Positions 3,673 to 33,768 of a stretch of DNA of 64,000 bases are shown here, in pieces (position 1 is the stretch's first letter; every line of letters begins with the position of its first letter). The position numbers and the translations under genes are program-made. Under the pieces are notes generated by a model. That model had not been told where the DNA came from. It saw only the letters and a program-made list of their open reading frames with translations, and ran no database searches. The stretch lies in sequence record ON529855.1, one strand, 5' to 3'.

Positions 3673-3893
3673 CAGGGCAGTCCCTGGGCCACAATGACCG
3701 CGACAGCGTGGTCGACATCGCCGGTGAAGTCCACGCCGCGCTCGATCGCCAGGGCGATCAGTTCGTCGGCCTTCTGATCCACAGGGCCGCCTGCGGCGGG
3801 ATAGGTCCCGCCGTTCAGCGCCGTCACCAGGGCACGGTGGACCTTGAAGGCCCAGCCGCCGTCATCTGTGTCGCCGAGGGTCAGGAGCGACAT
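3672..3893 (-). CDS. hypothetical protein (73 aa)
   Basis: TGATG coupling. Confidence 0.65.
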   Translation of the reverse strand: MSLLTLGDTDDGGWAFKVHRALVTALNGGTYPAAGGPVDQKADELIALAIERGVDFTGDVDHAVAVIVAQGLP

Positions 3894-4483
3894 CAGTCCT
3901 TGATCCTCCGGGCGGCGTTCCAGGCGTCGACCACGCCATGAGCGAACTCTTCGGCCTGCGCCACTGTGTCGAAGGCGTCGGAGGCGACGCGCAAGACGGT
4001 CATCGACCGGGTGTCATTCAGGCGGATGGCCGTGCGGGACACGGGCACATAGAAGCGCCCGTCGTCACGCGCGACCTTGTCGCCGACCGCCAGCTTTTGA
4101 CCGGCAAATTCATCCACGCCAGGGTTGCAGTAGGTTTCCGCCGCCATCAGCAGTTCGGGGCCGGTCATGGCCGCGTCTTGGCGGACCATGCCCGCCGCGA
4201 TCAGGACGTTGCCCAGGGCCTGACCCAGCATCTTCAGGCGCGCCTCCGCCTGTTCCAGCGACCCGGCGTCCCGATAGGTCGTCCGGGCGTAGGGGTATAT
4301 CCGATCGAAGGCGGCGCGTTTGCCGCAAGCGGAGCAGATATGCTCGTACTTCGGCGGATCGCAGGTGTAGACCGTGTCGCCCACCTTCATGTCACCCTTA
4401 CCGCAGGTCTCGCAGCGGTAGCGGACGGTCGTCACAGTGTCGGGCACCTGGGCGGGCGCCGCTGCATCCTGATACTCGGCCAT
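3893..4483 (-). CDS. zinc-ribbon-containing hypothetical protein (196 aa)
   Basis: CETC...CSAC pair near N-terminus. Confidence 0.65.
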   Translation of the reverse strand: MAEYQDAAAPAQVPDTVTTVRYRCETCGKGDMKVGDTVYTCDPPKYEHICSACGKRAAFDRIYPYARTTYRDAGSLEQAEARLKMLGQALGNVLIAAGMVRQDAAMTGPELLMAAETYCNPGVDEFAGQKLAVGDKVARDDGRFYVPVSRTAIRLNDTRSMTVLRVASDAFDTVAQAEEFAHGVVDAWNAARRIKD

Positions 4484-6924: not shown

Positions 6925-7295
6925 GAGTGAATCTCGTCGCGCCCGTCCAGCGCGTCGTCGCGCTGGCACAGGTCGACCAGGCGGTGGACCGAGAGATGGC
7001 GATCGTAGATGGCGCAGCCGTCGAACTTGAACAGTTCCGACGCTTCATGCATCAGGGCGCGCTGCACCGCCGCCCAGAGCGTCTGGACGATCTCGGTATC
7101 GGTCATCCACTGCGACAGCTTCCACTTGCGGCCCTTCCATTCAATGGGCAGGCCGGTGGAGGTGTCGACGCCGTCAGGGCAGATGATCTGGCACCAGGGC
7201 TCGTCGATCGAGCCCGAGACCTTGAACGTGAAGCCGGGATAGCGGCATCGCGCCACCACCGCCTCCAGTTCGGCGAAGGTTTTCGGATCGAACAT
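6921..7295 (-). CDS. hypothetical protein (124 aa)
   Basis: ORF; GRKW...S...T..E.VQT...A....MHEA.E.F pattern seen in phage proteins. Confidence 0.7.
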   Translation of the reverse strand: MFDPKTFAELEAVVARCRYPGFTFKVSGSIDEPWCQIICPDGVDTSTGLPIEWKGRKWKLSQWMTDTEIVQTLWAAVQRALMHEASELFKFDGCAIYDRHLSVHRLVDLCQRDDALDGRDEIHS

Positions 7296-7825
7296 CAGGC
7301 GGGCGGCCGGGCTTTCGCCCGCGCCTCCAGCGCTGCCATGAGGCGGCTGTTGTCGTAGCGGACCTGACCCGGCAGGGCGGCCTTCAGCGCCTTCACATCC
7401 TTGATGTGACGGGTGAACATCACCACCGGCGGCACGTCATCCGCCAGGGACTCGCCGGTGTAATGGTACATCTCGGCTTCGATCACCAGGACGTCGCCGT
7501 CAAAGACCTTGACGCGAGGACCGGTCAGTCCGGCCTTGTAGCCATTGTGGGAATCCCAGGCCTGACCCAGTTCCCCTTCGAAACGGGGGTCCTTGAGGTC
7601 GACGCGCACGTCGATAGGCCAGGTCTCCTGACCAATGACGTGACCGTCAGCCTGGACCTGCTTGATCCAATCCACGGCGAGCGAGGCGTGCTCATGGCGG
7701 AAGGCCTCCTGCGTGAAGGTCACGGCGCGCAGCGTCGGTGGCGTCACGGCAGCCAGGGCGGCGGCGGGTAGGGCGCTCAGCGCCGCAGCGGCGCCGGCGG
7801 ATTTGAACAGGGTGCGGCGGTTCAT
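7295..7825 (-). CDS. twin-arginine (Tat) signal-containing exported protein (176 aa)
   Basis: MNRRTLFKSAGAAAALSALPAAALA: RR-x-hydrophobic-K, hydrophobic core and AxA cleavage site; SD GAGGAG. Confidence 0.7.
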   Translation of the reverse strand: MNRRTLFKSAGAAAALSALPAAALAAVTPPTLRAVTFTQEAFRHEHASLAVDWIKQVQADGHVIGQETWPIDVRVDLKDPRFEGELGQAWDSHNGYKAGLTGPRVKVFDGDVLVIEAEMYHYTGESLADDVPPVVMFTRHIKDVKALKAALPGQVRYDNSRLMAALEARAKARPPA

Positions 7826-7835
7826 CAGGGACTCC

Positions 7836-8084
7836 TCAGTCGAGAGGGATGTCGTGATAGGCGAGCCAGTCCTGGAGTTCCCCGCGCGAAGAGAAGTCAT
7901 TGACCTCCAACTCGCCCGAGGCCCCCGACAGGGTGCAGCCCCAGTAGCCTTCATCGTCATCCTGTTCGAGGAATTGCGCCGTCACGTCGTCGTCTTCGGC
8001 CGCCTCCCCGAAGCGCTCGAACCAGATCAGACCGAGGTCGTCGCCGGGTTGCAGCACGGGGGCGTTGAAGAAGTCCTGACGCAA
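7836..8084 (-). CDS. acidic hypothetical protein (82 aa, TTG start)
   Basis: GAGGA 6 nt upstream of TTG. Confidence 0.65.
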   Translation of the reverse strand: MRQDFFNAPVLQPGDDLGLIWFERFGEAAEDDDVTAQFLEQDDDEGYWGCTLSGASGELEVNDFSSRGELQDWLAYHDIPLD

Positions 8085-8104
8085 GACGCATCCTCAGAGA
8101 AAGT

Positions 8105-8351
8105 AGAGTGGGAGCGAGGGCGGACGACGCATGAGCACAGGGCAAAAAGCACAGGGCAAAAAGCATCCCAGCAAACGTGTCACAAACCCCGAGCAATAGA
8201 GCAGCGCCATTGTTTCAGGCGGCCCGAAGGCACGTTGTTTGATCGGGGGCAGCACGACACGATCCCATAAAAGGGTGGTGCGTATGTTTTCCGCATCTAG
8301 GCCCGAAGGCCTTGATGTTTTGGGCGCCGCCCGTATCCTCGCTCCCACCCC
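8105..8351 (-). ncRNA. candidate novel structured RNA (~245 nt)
   Basis: 12-bp stem (8337-8348 with 8108-8119) stacked on a 10-bp stem with 2 G-U pairs (8324-8333 with 8121-8130); two cUUCGg hairpins (8294-8317, 8222-8231); 14-nt tandem repeat 8134-8165; lies in a 313-nt ORF-free gap in a genome where gaps are usually <20 nt. Confidence 0.7.
8134..8165. repeat. tandem repeat, 14-nt unit agcacagggcaaaa x2.3
   Basis: Exact copies at 8134-8147 and 8148-8161, plus partial copy 8162-8165. Confidence 0.9.
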
Positions 8352-8359
8352 TCGGTTCA

Positions 8360-8379
8360 GGCAGGCCCTAAGGCCCGCC
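8360..8379 (-). other. 8-bp GC-rich hairpin between 198-aa ORF stop and the candidate ncRNA
   Basis: GGCGGGCC-UUAG-GGCCUGCC on minus strand (one G-U pair). Confidence 0.6.
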
Positions 8380-8397
8380 GTCCCCAAGCGGGTGAAA

Positions 8398-8994
8398 TCA
8401 GTTCAGCTTGAAACGCTCGACCAGCGTCACCACAGCCTCGGGCAGGGTGATGCGATGGCCGGCGTTCAGGCCCAGCAGTTCGTCGGCGATCTCCGCCTTC
8501 TCGCGGCGAATGTCGCGCAGGGCGTCCTCCAGGCCGTCGTAGGCCGAACGGGGGACCCGCACCGAAACGCTGTCGGCGGCGGCGGCGCGAACGCCGGCGG
8601 TCTTGGCGGCCTCGTGCTGCGCCAGGAGGGCTTCGAAGCGGCGCGGGGCCAGGACGACCTCATCGGACGCCGAGGCGGCGGGCGCATAGGCGAAGACCTG
8701 CGTCAGCAGCTTCTCCTTGCGATCGAGCAGCGCCTTGCGGGTCAGGACGTCGTTGATGCCTGAGGTGTGGAAGGCCTTGCCCATCAGGGCGCGCACGGCG
8801 TAGGCGGCCTCGGTCAGCGCCAGGGCGTCCTCCAGGGCGGTGCGCATCGCTTGGGCGGCGGCGTCCACCTTGCCGGCGAAATCGGGGGCCGTGTCGTAGA
8901 TGGAGAACGCCACAGCGTGCTCGGCGGACTGCTTCAGGGCTTCGTCTTGAAGCGATTTGGCGAGCGCGTTGGCTTTGCGCAGATTGACTTGCAT
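8398..8994 (-). CDS. conserved helical/coiled-coil phage protein (198 aa), possibly DIP1984-like
   Basis: Ala/Leu-rich heptad-like helices; MQVNLRKANAL... start and K.EI.DELL.LN...I.L end; SD GGAGGA; own promoter. Confidence 0.75.
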   Translation of the reverse strand: MQVNLRKANALAKSLQDEALKQSAEHAVAFSIYDTAPDFAGKVDAAAQAMRTALEDALALTEAAYAVRALMGKAFHTSGINDVLTRKALLDRKEKLLTQVFAYAPAASASDEVVLAPRRFEALLAQHEAAKTAGVRAAAADSVSVRVPRSAYDGLEDALRDIRREKAEIADELLGLNAGHRITLPEAVVTLVERFKLN

Positions 8995-9019
8995 CGGGTC
9001 CTCCGTAATTCGTTTGCCG

Positions 9020-9049
9020 TGTTTACTGGCACTTGGCGCCGTCTGTCAA
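9020..9049 (-). promoter_or_regulatory. sigma70-like promoter for 198-aa ORF and candidate ncRNA
   Basis: TTGACA (9044-9049) with TAAACA-like -10 about 18 nt downstream. Confidence 0.55.
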
Positions 9050-18410: not shown

Positions 18411-18956
18411 CTAGGCGGCGTATCGGTCGAGCATCCAGTGCAGGTCCATCGGCTCGAAGGCGTCGAACTCCTCGATCAGGTCGGCCGTCACGGGGAACAT
18501 GATCACTTCAGCCGAGGCGGGCGGGACGACGCTGCGGCGACTATCGGCCACGGCGCCCTTGCCGCGTCCGATGCTCTGGCGAGGCTTCACGCCGCGTTTC
18601 GGCTTGTAGGTCGCCTTGCGGCGCAGGGCGTTGCTCTGCTTGGACGTCTCGGCGGCGTCGGCCCGCTTCAACCCCAGGCGGTCGAGCCGGCCCAGGACGG
18701 CGCTGCGGCTGCGATTGCCCATGAGCAGGCTGATCTCCTGGGCGGTCTTGCCTTCGCGCCAGAGCCGTATCAGTTCGTCAACCTCGGTCTGCGGCCAGCC
18801 GTGGGTCGGCTTTTTCGGCTGAGCGGCCCTGCGGGCCTGGACCTTTGCGATCCGACGCAGTTCTGCCCGCTCCTGCGGATCGGCGGGGACCTCCATGTCG
18901 TCCCAGTCGCCAGAGCCGCGCCAGTCTCGGCTCGGATCGCCTTCCAGAAGCGTCAT
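18411..18956 (-). CDS. gcrA: GcrA-like cell-cycle regulator (N-terminal GcrA domain only)
   Basis: WPQTEVDELIRLWREGKTAQEISLLMGNRSRSAVLGRLDRLGL matches the GcrA N-terminal HTH pattern; no C-terminal CxWP..DP domain. Confidence 0.75.
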   Translation of the reverse strand: MTLLEGDPSRDWRGSGDWDDMEVPADPQERAELRRIAKVQARRAAQPKKPTHGWPQTEVDELIRLWREGKTAQEISLLMGNRSRSAVLGRLDRLGLKRADAAETSKQSNALRRKATYKPKRGVKPRQSIGRGKGAVADSRRSVVPPASAEVIMFPVTADLIEEFDAFEPMDLHWMLDRYAA

Positions 18957-20263
18957 CACCCCGCCAACCCGACTTCCGGCAGGCGCGGGCGCAGGTAGGG
19001 GACCAGAATGGCCGGCATGTCGACGCCGCCGTCGTCGGTCTGATGGTTCTCGAACAGCGCCGCCAGGGTGCGGCCGACCGCCAGGCCGGAGCCGTTCAGG
19101 CTGTGCAGGTAGCCCAGCTTGCCGTCCGCCTGGCGATAGCGGCCCTTCATCCGCCGGGTCTGGAAGTCGCCGCACCAGGAGATCGAAGCGATCTCGACAT
19201 AGCGTTGCTGGCTGGGCATCCAGACTTCCAGGTCGATGGTCTTGCGGGCGGCGAAGCCCATGTCGCCGGCCGCGAGCAGCACCTTGCGATAGGGCAGTTC
19301 GAGGTATTGCAGGACCGCCTCGGCGCAGGCGACCTTGCGATCGAACTCAGCCTCGGCCTGTTCGGGCTCGACCAGGGAGACCAATTCCACCTTCATGAAC
19401 TGATGTTGGCGGATCAGGCCGGTGGTGTCGCGGCCGGCGGCGCCGGCTTCGGCGCGGAAACAGGGCGTCAGGGCGGTGAACCGCAGCGGCAGGGCCTCGC
19501 GCTCGGTGGTCTGCTCGCGCGCCAGGTTGGTCAGCGGCACCTCGCCGGTGGGGATCAGCAGGTTGCCGTCCGTCAATTGGAAAAGGTCGTCCTTGAACTT
19601 CGGCCACTGCCCGGTGGCGTACATGACGTTGGGCTTGACGATGCACGGGACCGACTTTTCGACGTAGCCGTGCCGGTGCACATGCAGGTCGAGCATGAAC
19701 TGGCCCAGGGCGCGCTCAACGCTGGCGAAGGCCCCCGACAGGACGGCGTAGCGCGATCCGCTCAGCCAACCGGCGACGGCGCTGTCGTAGCTGTTCCCGG
19801 CCAGGGTGACATGGTCCTTGGGCTCGACATAGGCGCGGCGCTGGCCCCATTCGCTGATGACGATGTTGTTCGCTTCGCCGCCCTCGGGGATGTCCTCGGC
19901 AGGCAGGTTCGGCAGTAGGTCGACCAGGCCTTCGCGGGTCTTGTAAAGGGCGTCTTCCTGCTTCGCCAACCGCTCCAGGCGCGGTTTGATCTCGGCCATG
20001 CGGGCGCGCAGGGTCTCTTCCTCGGACGGGGGCGCATCGTCTTCCCGCGCCGCCACGGGCCGAACGTCCCGGCGGAGTTCACCGATCCGGGTCGAGATAG
20101 CGTTGCGCTCGGTCTGAAGCGCCTGGAGTTCGGTGCGGGTCGCCTGGAGGTCGCGATGCGCCGCGCGGGCGTCGTCGACGATGGTCTTCACAGCCCCGCC
20201 GCGTTTGGCGATCGCCGCGACGACAGCGTCGGGTTCATTGTCGATCAGGTGAAAATCAAGCAT
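18956..20263 (-). CDS. serS: seryl-tRNA synthetase
   Basis: N-terminal coiled arm; LIPTGEVPL; motif 2 FRAEAGAAGRDTTGLIRQHQFMKVEL; motif 3 LNGSGLAVGRTLAAL. Confidence 0.95.
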   Translation of the reverse strand: MLDFHLIDNEPDAVVAAIAKRGGAVKTIVDDARAAHRDLQATRTELQALQTERNAISTRIGELRRDVRPVAAREDDAPPSEEETLRARMAEIKPRLERLAKQEDALYKTREGLVDLLPNLPAEDIPEGGEANNIVISEWGQRRAYVEPKDHVTLAGNSYDSAVAGWLSGSRYAVLSGAFASVERALGQFMLDLHVHRHGYVEKSVPCIVKPNVMYATGQWPKFKDDLFQLTDGNLLIPTGEVPLTNLAREQTTEREALPLRFTALTPCFRAEAGAAGRDTTGLIRQHQFMKVELVSLVEPEQAEAEFDRKVACAEAVLQYLELPYRKVLLAAGDMGFAARKTIDLEVWMPSQQRYVEIASISWCGDFQTRRMKGRYRQADGKLGYLHSLNGSGLAVGRTLAALFENHQTDDGGVDMPAILVPYLRPRLPEVGLAG

Positions 20264-33018: not shown

Positions 33019-33768
33019 CTAGGCCTCCTGGTTGCTCAGGGCGATGACCCGGTCCAGGCCGATGGCGACCTCGAACACCGTCAGGCTGTTCTTGGGCGTC
33101 GTGCCCAGATAGGGGTCGAACACCGGGAAGTCCGTGCGGCGCGAAGTCGAGGCGACCTCCTTCCACTCGGACTGACCGCCGCCGCGCCAGACGCCCTCGA
33201 TGTCGATCGTCTCGGTGGCGTAGCTGGGCAGGCGATCCGAAGGCACCAGGCGGGTGCGCTCGTTGATGATCGCCGCGATCTCCTCCTCCAACGCCTCGCG
33301 CAGCGCCGTGGCGTAGTCCGCATGGCTGTCGGCGCGGTAGATGCACTGGAATTCCAGTTGATAGAAGGCGTTGAAGCGCAGTTTCGCCGCCGTGGCGCCG
33401 TCGGCGGCCTCGGTGCGGAACGACAGACCGGCCTGCCACACGCACAGCGGCGGCTTGACGCCGGTCGCCTGGAGCAGGTGTTGCGCATAGAGGTAGGAGC
33501 CCGGCGTGGTTTCGGCCCGCAGCGCCCAGGTTTCGGCGTTCATCTCGCGGCGCAGCGAGAAGACGTCGTCGGCGTCATAGGCGTCCGAGAAGCCGGCGAG
33601 CGGCATGATGACCGGCGCCTCGACCCGTTCCAGGCGCCAGGACTGGTTCAGGTCCAGCAAGGTGCGTTCGACGCATCCCTTCAGTCGACCGATCGCCTGT
33701 TCGCGCTGCTGAATTTCCTTTTCGCTCCAGAATCGCAGACCTGCGATCGGATATAGCGCGCGACTCAT
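33019..33768 (-). CDS. class II aminoacyl-tRNA synthetase-like (GlyRS-like) catalytic domain without anticodon-binding domain (249 aa)
   Basis: LRAETTPG (LRPETAQG-like), motif 2 QAGLSFRTE...LRFNAFYQLEFQ, motif 3 FEVAIGLDRVI. Confidence 0.75.
   Translation of the reverse strand: MSRALYPIAGLRFWSEKEIQQREQAIGRLKGCVERTLLDLNQSWRLERVEAPVIMPLAGFSDAYDADDVFSLRREMNAETWALRAETTPGSYLYAQHLLQATGVKPPLCVWQAGLSFRTEAADGATAAKLRFNAFYQLEFQCIYRADSHADYATALREALEEEIAAIINERTRLVPSDRLPSYATETIDIEGVWRGGGQSEWKEVASTSRRTDFPVFDPYLGTTPKNSLTVFEVAIGLDRVIALSNQEA

Follow-up and report, generated by a model that had tools for sequence, protein, structure and literature searches.

What is encoded in an unannotated gap of a dense phage gene array, and does it belong together with the gene that precedes it? 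The question is raised by a 64,000-nucleotide (nt) stretch of sequence record ON529855.1 (hereafter the window), which derives from the Brevundimonas phage vB_BpoS-Domovoi (Domovoi), a 352.7-kb jumbo phage of the Dolichocephalovirinae; a window position equals the record position minus 124000. The gap in question is 313 nt long (8085–8397) and lies directly 3' of DOMOVOI_02640, the gene of a 198-amino-acid (aa) helical protein, within a long and dense minus-strand gene array in which nearly all genes are labelled 'hypothetical'. It is the largest intergenic gap within 50 kb of annotation, the next largest being 122–175 nt. A first-pass annotation had described here a TTGACA box, a strong Shine-Dalgarno site, the 198-aa helical protein, a hairpin and a structured RNA, and all of these could be located on the minus strand using the sequence, the open reading frames (ORFs), the predicted fold and an AlphaFold2 model. 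The present analysis revealed that the gap encodes a real, structured non-coding RNA on the sense strand, which, together with the 198-aa protein, very probably represents a genuine and undescribed RNA-protein gene pair.

A structured non-coding RNA in the gap

The RNA strand of the gap was predicted to fold with a minimum free energy (MFE) z-score of -4.2, and none of 200 shuffled sequences folded as well; these values, along with covarying helices, bear out the initial impression of structure beyond chance. A gap of 284–314 nt was present at the same place in all eight protein-carrying phage relatives (the Domovoi group, Gurke and Kikimora, CcrPW and CcrColossus), and three metagenomic relatives had a gap of 305–312 nt. 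Comparative analysis revealed compensatory changes in 24 of the 57 predicted pairs in 7 sequences and in 15 of 41 in 10 sequences (Domovoi group). In the closing helix P1, compensatory double changes were found in 8 of the 14 pairs among 10 relatives. A set of 39 metagenomic RNAs with a median pairwise identity of 47% showed compensatory changes in 29 of 33 predicted pairs, and the helix equivalent to P1 covaried. In this metagenomic set, 95% of the alignment cells could pair, compared to 38–44% when the partners were slid by 1–3 columns and 65% when columns were shuffled, and the covariation score was 0.84 compared to 0.10–0.14 in the controls, all as obtained from MAFFT alignments, which are not structure-aware, and with controls that ignore phylogeny.

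The pairing data also indicated the strand. In the Domovoi group, 31 G-U pairs were counted against no A-C pairs, and the metagenomic RNAs contained 126 G-U plus U-G pairs against 14 A-C or C-A pairs. Since G-U pairs were far above A-C pairs, the fold belongs to the sense strand. Searches against Rfam 15 gave no match at the gathering score in the whole window; with the threshold relaxed to E ≤ 10, the gap again had none, and nothing relevant was returned for three other subtypes of the RNA. No transfer-messenger RNA (tmRNA) or tRNA could be detected in the gap using ARAGORN and Rfam.

The order of elements common to Domovoi and the wider RNA family was P1, variable hairpins, P4 and P5, a U-G tract, and the 3' strand of P1. 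A 5' hairpin was present in most subtypes of the wider family, where the variable hairpins often included one with a conserved 7-nt loop, and where P4 and P5 enclosed a hairpin and a U/G-rich stretch. P4 was visible with different letters in the alignment of Gurke and CcrPW, and its equivalent helix covaried in the metagenomic family. The hairpin closed by P0, which is the one described in the first-pass annotation, was considered as a terminator and rejected because no U-tract follows it. The limits given for the RNA are nominal, the 5' limit being placed just past the stop codon and the 3' limit just past P1; the start at 8105 chosen in the first-pass annotation is one base past the 3' end of P1 (8106).

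The most conserved unpaired part of the RNA was a U/G-rich tract before the 3' strand of P1, in which U-G dinucleotides recur every 7 nt. The distances between U-G dinucleotides peaked at lags of 7 and 14 in all three RNA groups (in one example, 283 counts at lag 7 compared to 63–117 at the other lags below 14), and the heptad U-G positions accounted for most of the invariant alignment columns. The heptad tract is short, consisting of 5–8 repeats, and within the window RNA, Tandem Repeats Finder (TRF) reported only a 14-nt unit repeated 2.3 times at 8134–8165.

Adjacency of the RNA gene and the helical-protein gene

Close relatives share the whole neighbourhood and therefore prove little about the pairing. 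Three distant homologues of the protein in unrelated contexts also had a non-coding gap after the gene. A covariance model (CM R1) built from the syntenic phages only matched directly downstream of the gene in two of these three (L-numbers are the labels of the compared loci), L009 with an E value of 2.9e-9 over the full length and L011 with 2.4e-5. Across 80 viral loci, CM R1 produced 9 matches at E < 1, eight of which were located directly downstream of the gene. These loci were obtained from an IMG/VR scan that returned 148 relatives, 80 of which were kept as loci; with L009, L011 and L013 added, 69 non-redundant loci from uncultured phages remained. Profile analysis revealed a related RNA adjoining the gene on the same strand in 57 of the 69 loci, upstream in 34 and downstream in 23. 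Seven more loci carried the heptad signature 171–258 nt past the stop codon (among them L009, which also has the CM R1 match), and in three others a third RNA subtype was recognised by eye. Adjacency was observed in all 67 non-redundant loci that have flanking sequence, the remaining two of the 69 having none.

The upstream RNA mostly ended about 8–46 nt before the start codon, and the downstream RNA started at the stop codon or past one intervening tRNA. The adjacency was kept down to approximately 25% protein identity, through inversion of the order and changes of neighbourhood, and the Vibrio phage 2.275.O contained a 273-nt gap with a compact version of the RNA. The reverse test was conducted using a 16-nt degenerate pattern derived from the conserved columns, which was searched over viral contigs; 8 of 119 matching stretches held the RNA, the rest being chance, and all eight of these RNAs had the protein gene beside them. 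All 69 non-redundant loci contained the helical protein but no second protein family in common; the most frequent real family after it, an RNA polymerase omega-like one, occurred in 13. The gene-neighbourhood comparison called for in the first-pass annotation thus returned a related RNA beside the homologues, unrelated contexts included, and the refuting outcome named there, homologues devoid of such an RNA, was clearly contradicted. Its expectation that the RNA would follow the homologues held as far as adjacency on the same strand is concerned, which was constant, while the RNA was sometimes upstream rather than downstream of the gene. With adjacency in every flanked locus and neither part belonging to a described family, the proposal of an undescribed module of protein and non-coding RNA was upheld.

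The boundaries of the pair could be read in several loci. In 13 loci, the conserved 5' end of the RNA was preceded at 7–8 nt (12 nt in one case) by the end of a near-consensus promoter, which matched at least 10 of 12 consensus positions in each locus and all 12 in six of them. In 11 other loci, a tRNA gene ended 1–15 nt before the RNA 5' end (1–5 nt in 10 of the 11). A tRNA gene came next after the downstream RNA in most cases; L009 and Vibrio phage 2.275.O had an intrinsic terminator at this place. Such flanks are those expected of a discrete RNA whose ends arise from transcription initiation and tRNA processing. Since such promoter, tRNA and terminator boundaries surround the pair in the relatives, and since no terminator-like site was found between the 198-aa gene and the RNA on the minus strand of Domovoi, the two appear to be co-transcribed as one unit in Domovoi.

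A promoter belonging to the Domovoi unit itself had also been proposed. The TTGACA box and the box 17 nt downstream were kept in all eight relatives whose aligned segment reaches that far, including CcrPW and CcrColossus, which have approximately 30% protein identity to Domovoi; the aligned segment of Gurke is too short to cover the TTGACA position. Columns of the -10 region were invariant across all 9 sequences, and the remaining spacer had diverged. The conserved boxes therefore support this part of the proposal, but the sigma-70 scan called no promoter ahead of the 198-aa gene because the -10 hexamer is weak, and promoter activity is best regarded as putative.

The AlphaFold2 model of the 198-aa protein, built with 16 homologues, had a mean predicted local distance difference test (pLDDT) score of 87.7 and a predicted template modelling (pTM) score of 0.74, and consisted of long helices with two short strands. 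No Pfam match was obtained for the protein, the only hit being DUF7877 at E 0.19; at E ≤ 10, NCBIfam gave only a chance match to VanS-O and PADLOC gave no family. Eight further family members also had no relevant Pfam match. Against the PDB, phmmer returned no matches at E ≤ 10, and family profiles of 15 and 29 sequences returned chance matches only (E 0.13 or higher). A Foldseek search of the PDB with the AlphaFold2 model found nothing at E ≤ 0.001 (best E 0.2, TM 0.23), and the best matches were generic long helical bundles with a TM score below 0.3, which are non-significant. Foldseek against BFVD, a collection of predicted viral structures, retrieved uncharacterised phage proteins only. 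A weak match to phrog_25230, a profile with no function assigned, was observed at E 6.2e-5 and 23.9 bits, aligning residues 1–178 with profile positions 1–172 of 192, and three of eight other family members matched it equally weakly. Rfam 15, Pfam, NCBIfam, PADLOC and the PDB contain no family for either part of the pair, and this weak match to an unnamed PHROG is the only one found.

The protein family itself is large. When the 16-homologue profile was run against 1.84 billion representatives of clusters defined at 50% identity, 1721 clusters passed E ≤ 0.001, of which 1048 also passed E ≤ 1e-10; among the matches listed, nearly all clusters were 184–205 aa long and aligned end to end. Comparison of 29 diverse members revealed eight invariant residues, namely L5, R6, K7, A8, R68, L84, D171 and N177. 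Among 50,697 cultured phage records, the protein occurred only in Brevundimonas jumbo phages, CcrColossus, CcrPW and Vibrio phage 2.275.O, and a pattern-limited search of 185,579 species genomes found it in only two contigs of metagenome-assembled genomes (MAGs). The module looks virus-specific.

Table 1. Features of the RNA-protein gene pair and its surroundings, in window positions and in the order of transcription
Feature	Position	Strand	Basis or remark
-35-like box TTGACA, candidate promoter	9044–9049	-	direct reading
Weak -10-like hexamer, 17-nt spacer after the -35 box	9021–9026	-	direct reading; promoter activity putative
Ribosome-binding site GGAGG, 5 nt ahead of the ATG at 8994	9000–9004	-	direct reading
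DOMOVOI_02640, 198-aa helical protein, annotated hypothetical	8398–8994	-	ORF and annotation
Structured non-coding RNA, ~290 nt	8105–8394	-	covariation, CM R1 match 8095–8403, MFE z-score
P0, 5-bp closing stem (8388–8384 with 8355–8351) around a variable hairpin	8351–8388	-	inner hairpin covaries
P1 5' strand, 14-bp closing helix of the RNA	8337–8350	-	pairs with 8106–8119
P4 5' strand	8256–8260	-	pairs with 8177–8181; single-sequence prediction
P5 5' strand	8243–8249	-	pairs with 8187–8192; equivalent helix covaries in the metagenomic family
Two covarying hairpins inside P5	8222–8233 and 8205–8221	-	covariation
Conserved U/G-rich stretch inside P5	8194–8204	-	alignment
P5 3' strand	8187–8192	-	pairs with 8243–8249
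P4 3' strand	8177–8181	-	pairs with 8256–8260
U/G-rich tract, U-G dinucleotides every 7 nt	8130–8173	-	U-G at 8165, 8158, 8151, 8144, 8137
P1 3' strand	8106–8119	-	pairs with 8337–8350
Next gene, 82 aa, hypothetical	7836–8084	-	ORF and annotation; ribosome site a few bases past P1

Genomic setting and the proposed ribonucleoprotein

The pair was mostly found among phage tRNA genes. At least three tRNA genes were located within about 3 kb in 54 of the 69 loci, with the gene embedded in the array, and the median was 7 tRNA genes per 6.5-kb locus. By profile, 21 of the 69 loci had a full-length GOLLD RNA (RF02032) on the strand of the pair and no more than 3 kb away, and Rfam confirmed GOLLD in 17 of the loci examined. 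It was mostly 170–1700 nt upstream of the pair, often with an embedded tRNA (examples are L011 3225–3686, L021 2209–2675, L023 864–1325, L038 2142–2606 and L028 2332–2795). No GOLLD RNA was detected by Rfam in the Domovoi window.

Several other genes recur in these islands. The RNA polymerase omega-like gene (PF01192, Rpb6) was beside the module in 13 loci (e.g., L013 1783–1986, L099 4276–4530, and L035 just upstream of 3000), and its L013 copy overlaps the 5' end of the gene for the helical protein. Recurrent neighbours also included an RF-1-domain protein of the ribosome-rescue type, a cytidine/adenosine-deaminase-like protein and an RNase H-like protein (PF04308), examples of such RNA- and translation-related neighbours being located at L037 2006–2380, L050 3830–4303 and L092 1120–1596, as well as HNH nucleases and 2-oxoglutarate (2OG)-Fe(II) oxygenases. 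In L009 (GCA_040384225.1, a 569,850-bp contig), the segment 5141–6493 contains the module followed by the terminator, a 48-aa ORF and a cysteinyl-tRNA synthetase gene. Three islands carried tmRNA genes separate from the RNA studied (L038 4479–4904, L060 5156–5611 and L033 1681–1940), matching the Rfam models tmRNA_permuted and beta_tmRNA; the 'permuted tmRNA' calls made by ARAGORN in some loci were likewise separate genes and were set aside as candidates for this RNA. In L061, a CyVA-1 RNA match (RF02965, 54.6 bits) was located directly after the module RNA at 3821–3896, and a group I intron match at the gathering score (50.1 compared to 50) further upstream at 969–1172. tRNAs with a CTA anticodon, the amber-suppressor type that ARAGORN labels Pyl, were found at L011 1971–2045, L023 4142–4217 and L036 4588–4662; since suppressor-type tRNAs were near the module in only these three loci, no link to recoding was seen.

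In the Domovoi array itself, the 82-aa gene that follows the RNA was found only in the syntenic Brevundimonas and Caulobacter phages and is a neighbour rather than a conserved partner. The product of the second gene past the RNA (7295–7825, minus strand) weakly matched a twin-arginine signal and an anti-sigma-E-like NCBIfam model, and the gene was conserved alongside the module only in Brevundimonas and Caulobacter phages. Genes annotated as a GcrA-like cell-cycle regulator, a seryl-tRNA synthetase and a second aminoacyl-tRNA-synthetase-like protein are located in the same array at 18411–20263 and 33019–33768 (minus strand); despite the annotated synthetase genes, ARAGORN detected no tRNA gene in the window. 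In Kabachok, an extra 1-kb gene annotated 'major capsid protein' (L002 5084–6094) lies a few genes downstream of the module and splits genes that are neighbours in Domovoi.

On balance, the pair probably works as a complex, that is, as a ribonucleoprotein (RNP) of the folded RNA and the helical protein. According to this proposal, the gap RNA would be made in the same transcription unit as the protein and would act together with it. The core formed by P1, P4 and P5 would set the shape of the RNA, and copies of the helical protein may bind the single-stranded U-G tract, one protomer per heptad. The pair would represent a portable phage module with the tRNA gene islands as its normal home, and its field of action may be the translation and RNA apparatus of the infected cell. 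Translation or tRNA biology is proposed because of the tRNA-island setting and the translation- and RNA-related neighbours; such a link is likely, as judged by association from the genomic setting only. A further step, in which the pair would constitute a new class of phage RNP that uses the U-G tract as a ruler to take up a fixed number of protein copies and acts on the host translation machinery or on phage tRNAs, is tentative and should be read as a possibility on the doubtful side; such a particle could possibly act with GOLLD RNA cages.

Several observations weigh against an RNP. The invariant polar residues of the protein are few (R6, K7, R68, D171 and N177), the protein is near neutral, with a median isoelectric point of 6.6 and a median net charge of 0 in the 29 diverse members, and Pfam and NCBIfam revealed no recognisable RNA-binding domain in it. 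The contact between protein and RNA is deduced from gene adjacency and the RNA sequence only, and the two genes could be neighbours because they are regulated or mobilised together, without their products forming a complex. The pairs of the Brevundimonas and Caulobacter phages lie outside tRNA islands, the window having no tRNA genes. Moreover, a second covariance model (CM R2), built from the AT-rich metagenomic RNAs only, found another subtype (L044 at E 1.7e-8) but missed the GC-rich window RNA even with the filters off, so that the reciprocal test failed. What connects the Domovoi RNA with the wider family is therefore other evidence, namely the one-way matches of CM R1, the location of eight of the nine weaker R1 matches in the expected place, the order of the helices and the heptad tract.

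Four other explanations were weighed against the RNP. That there is no RNA gene at all, and that the gap is a missed small protein gene or a DNA site such as an origin, a packaging site or a binding site, is hardly credible. A 97-aa ORF (8094–8387, minus strand) does span the Domovoi gap, yet a coding gap was rejected on comparison with close relatives, in which this ORF is broken (the longest open run being 61–63 codons in Kabachok, L019 and L017); insertion and deletion runs in the gap RNA are multiples of three in only 18–20%, a 7-nt period is unfit for codons, and the compensatory helices contain numerous G-U pairs, whose counterparts on the opposite strand would not pair. It is unlikely that the RNA is instead a cis-acting leader or trailer of the protein's messenger, serving translation or stability and perhaps bound by the protein for autoregulation. 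The RNA upstream of the gene in 34 loci occupies, at its usual distance from the start codon, the usual place of a leader, no terminator separates the gene from the RNA in Domovoi, and promoters are found directly ahead of the RNA-protein pair. However, the RNA comes after the gene in at least 23 loci, and in L013, L035 and L041 (where the RNA starts 75 nt past the stop codon) a tRNA gene lies between the two, so that tRNA processing would cut the RNA off the messenger. The same reasoning applies to the 11 loci in which a tRNA ends 1–15 nt before the RNA, which would therefore be released as a separate molecule, and a 290-nt multi-helix fold with invariant unpaired bases exceeds the needs of known protein-binding operators.

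The RNA might also act alone in the manner of GOLLD and ROOL, the protein being a co-regulated or co-inherited neighbour or serving another step without binding the RNA. This explanation has a small share of the probability. It draws on the GOLLD genes found nearby in 21 of the 69 loci, on a protein that is not basic, and on the precedent of GOLLD and ROOL as RNA-only assemblies without a known protein partner (Kretsch et al., 10.1101/2024.12.08.627333). It has to contend with an adjacency that survives order inversion, new neighbourhoods and divergence to approximately 25% protein identity, which no other neighbour does, and neither partner was found without the other in the sampled loci. A conflict system, either a type III-like pair in which the RNA neutralises a harmful protein or a decoy RNA with a protein directed against a tRNA-directed defence, is improbable. 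A repeat-bearing RNA that shares a transcription unit with a protein gene would suit such a system, and so would the location among phage tRNA genes, for which a role in countering host defences aimed at tRNAs has been proposed; the weak Foldseek neighbours included pore-forming helical toxins, at a best E of 0.2 and TM < 0.3, which is non-significant. PADLOC gave no match, however, the RNA is one folded molecule with a 7-nt period rather than a series of tandem 30–40-nt units, and the family is nearly absent from bacteria, as judged from the pattern-limited genome search. The specific roles suggested in the first-pass annotation (an RNA-templated oligomer, a toxin/antitoxin-like pair or an anti-defence RNP) are unsupported conjectures. 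The RNP of folded RNA and helical protein is accordingly retained as the preferred explanation, with the reservations given above.

The finding bears on two of the largest and most puzzling RNAs of the bacterial world, GOLLD and ROOL, both of which occur in phage tRNA islands. The module RNA adds a third conserved structured RNA to these islands and, unlike GOLLD and ROOL, it has a fixed protein partner, through which tRNA-island biology can be entered by way of binding, structure and timing. If the new RNP class were real, the tRNA-island RNAs would gain their first member with a protein partner, and cultured phages would be at hand as models. The pair is available in cultured phages whose hosts are convenient in the laboratory, namely the Brevundimonas phages of the Domovoi group, the Caulobacter phages CcrColossus and CcrPW, and Vibrio phage 2.275.O. 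With no Pfam, NCBIfam or PADLOC family for the 1721 clusters and no Rfam 15 entry for the RNA, the pair goes unannotated in many phage genomes.

Comparison with known systems

The papers searched contained no description of the RNA-protein pair, although fragments of it may be present among the 10,006 candidate viral RNAs of PMC10690425. The first-pass annotation had likened the protein by eye to the DIP1984-like family, which is similar in length and in its high helix content. This likeness is not supported, as no match was obtained in sequence, profile or fold searches: NCBIfam, Pfam, and PDB sequence and profile searches gave none, Foldseek found nothing in the PDB at E ≤ 0.001, and no DIP1984 entry was among the 50 Foldseek PDB rows listed.

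A short motif at fixed spacing is the signature of fixed-register RNA binding, as in the triplets bound by the TRAP ring or the fixed number of bases bound per subunit by viral nucleocapsid proteins. The short invariant motif of the module RNA recurs at a fixed spacing as well, but the likeness is an analogy only, since there is no relation in sequence or fold and the register of the module is 7 nt over a tract of 5–8 repeats. Type III toxin-antitoxin systems (ToxIN type) resemble the module in having a protein of less than 200 aa and an adjacent repeat-bearing RNA in one transcription unit. Type III antitoxin RNAs are tandem arrays of roughly 36-nt units that are cut by the toxin, whereas the module RNA is a single folded 290-nt molecule with a 7-nt period, in which TRF found no tandem direct repeats of tens of bases; the module protein, furthermore, is all-helical in its predicted structure and has no PADLOC match. 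In the tmRNA-SmpB system, too, a single small protein acts in translation together with an RNA of a few hundred bases, and tmRNA also occurs in phage islands. In contrast to tmRNA, neither a tRNA-like end nor a tag reading frame was seen in the module RNA, and the protein has no match to SmpB.

The OLE RNA, likewise large, structured and non-coding, also has a protein dedicated to it, and the genes of the OLE partners are located beside the OLE RNA gene. It differs in being bacterial, occurring in extremophilic anaerobes, and in being localised to the membrane via its protein partner; the module is of phage origin, its protein is predicted to be a soluble-looking helical bundle, and no relation in sequence or Rfam model connects the two. 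GOLLD and ROOL are closest in habitat, being phage-encoded and elaborately folded non-coding RNAs located among tRNA genes, whose function is likewise not known. None of the four subtypes of the module RNA had a covariance-model match to either, even at E ≤ 10, and the same Rfam searches that miss the module RNA do detect GOLLD elsewhere in the loci. The module RNA is approximately one third the size of GOLLD and carries the heptad U-G tract. GOLLD and ROOL form RNA-only assemblies and have no known protein partner (Kretsch et al., 10.1101/2024.12.08.627333), whereas the module RNA always adjoins one particular protein gene. The nearest counterparts of the pair are GOLLD and ROOL, which share its habitat, and the OLE RNA with its proteins, which embodies the same idea in unrelated molecules.

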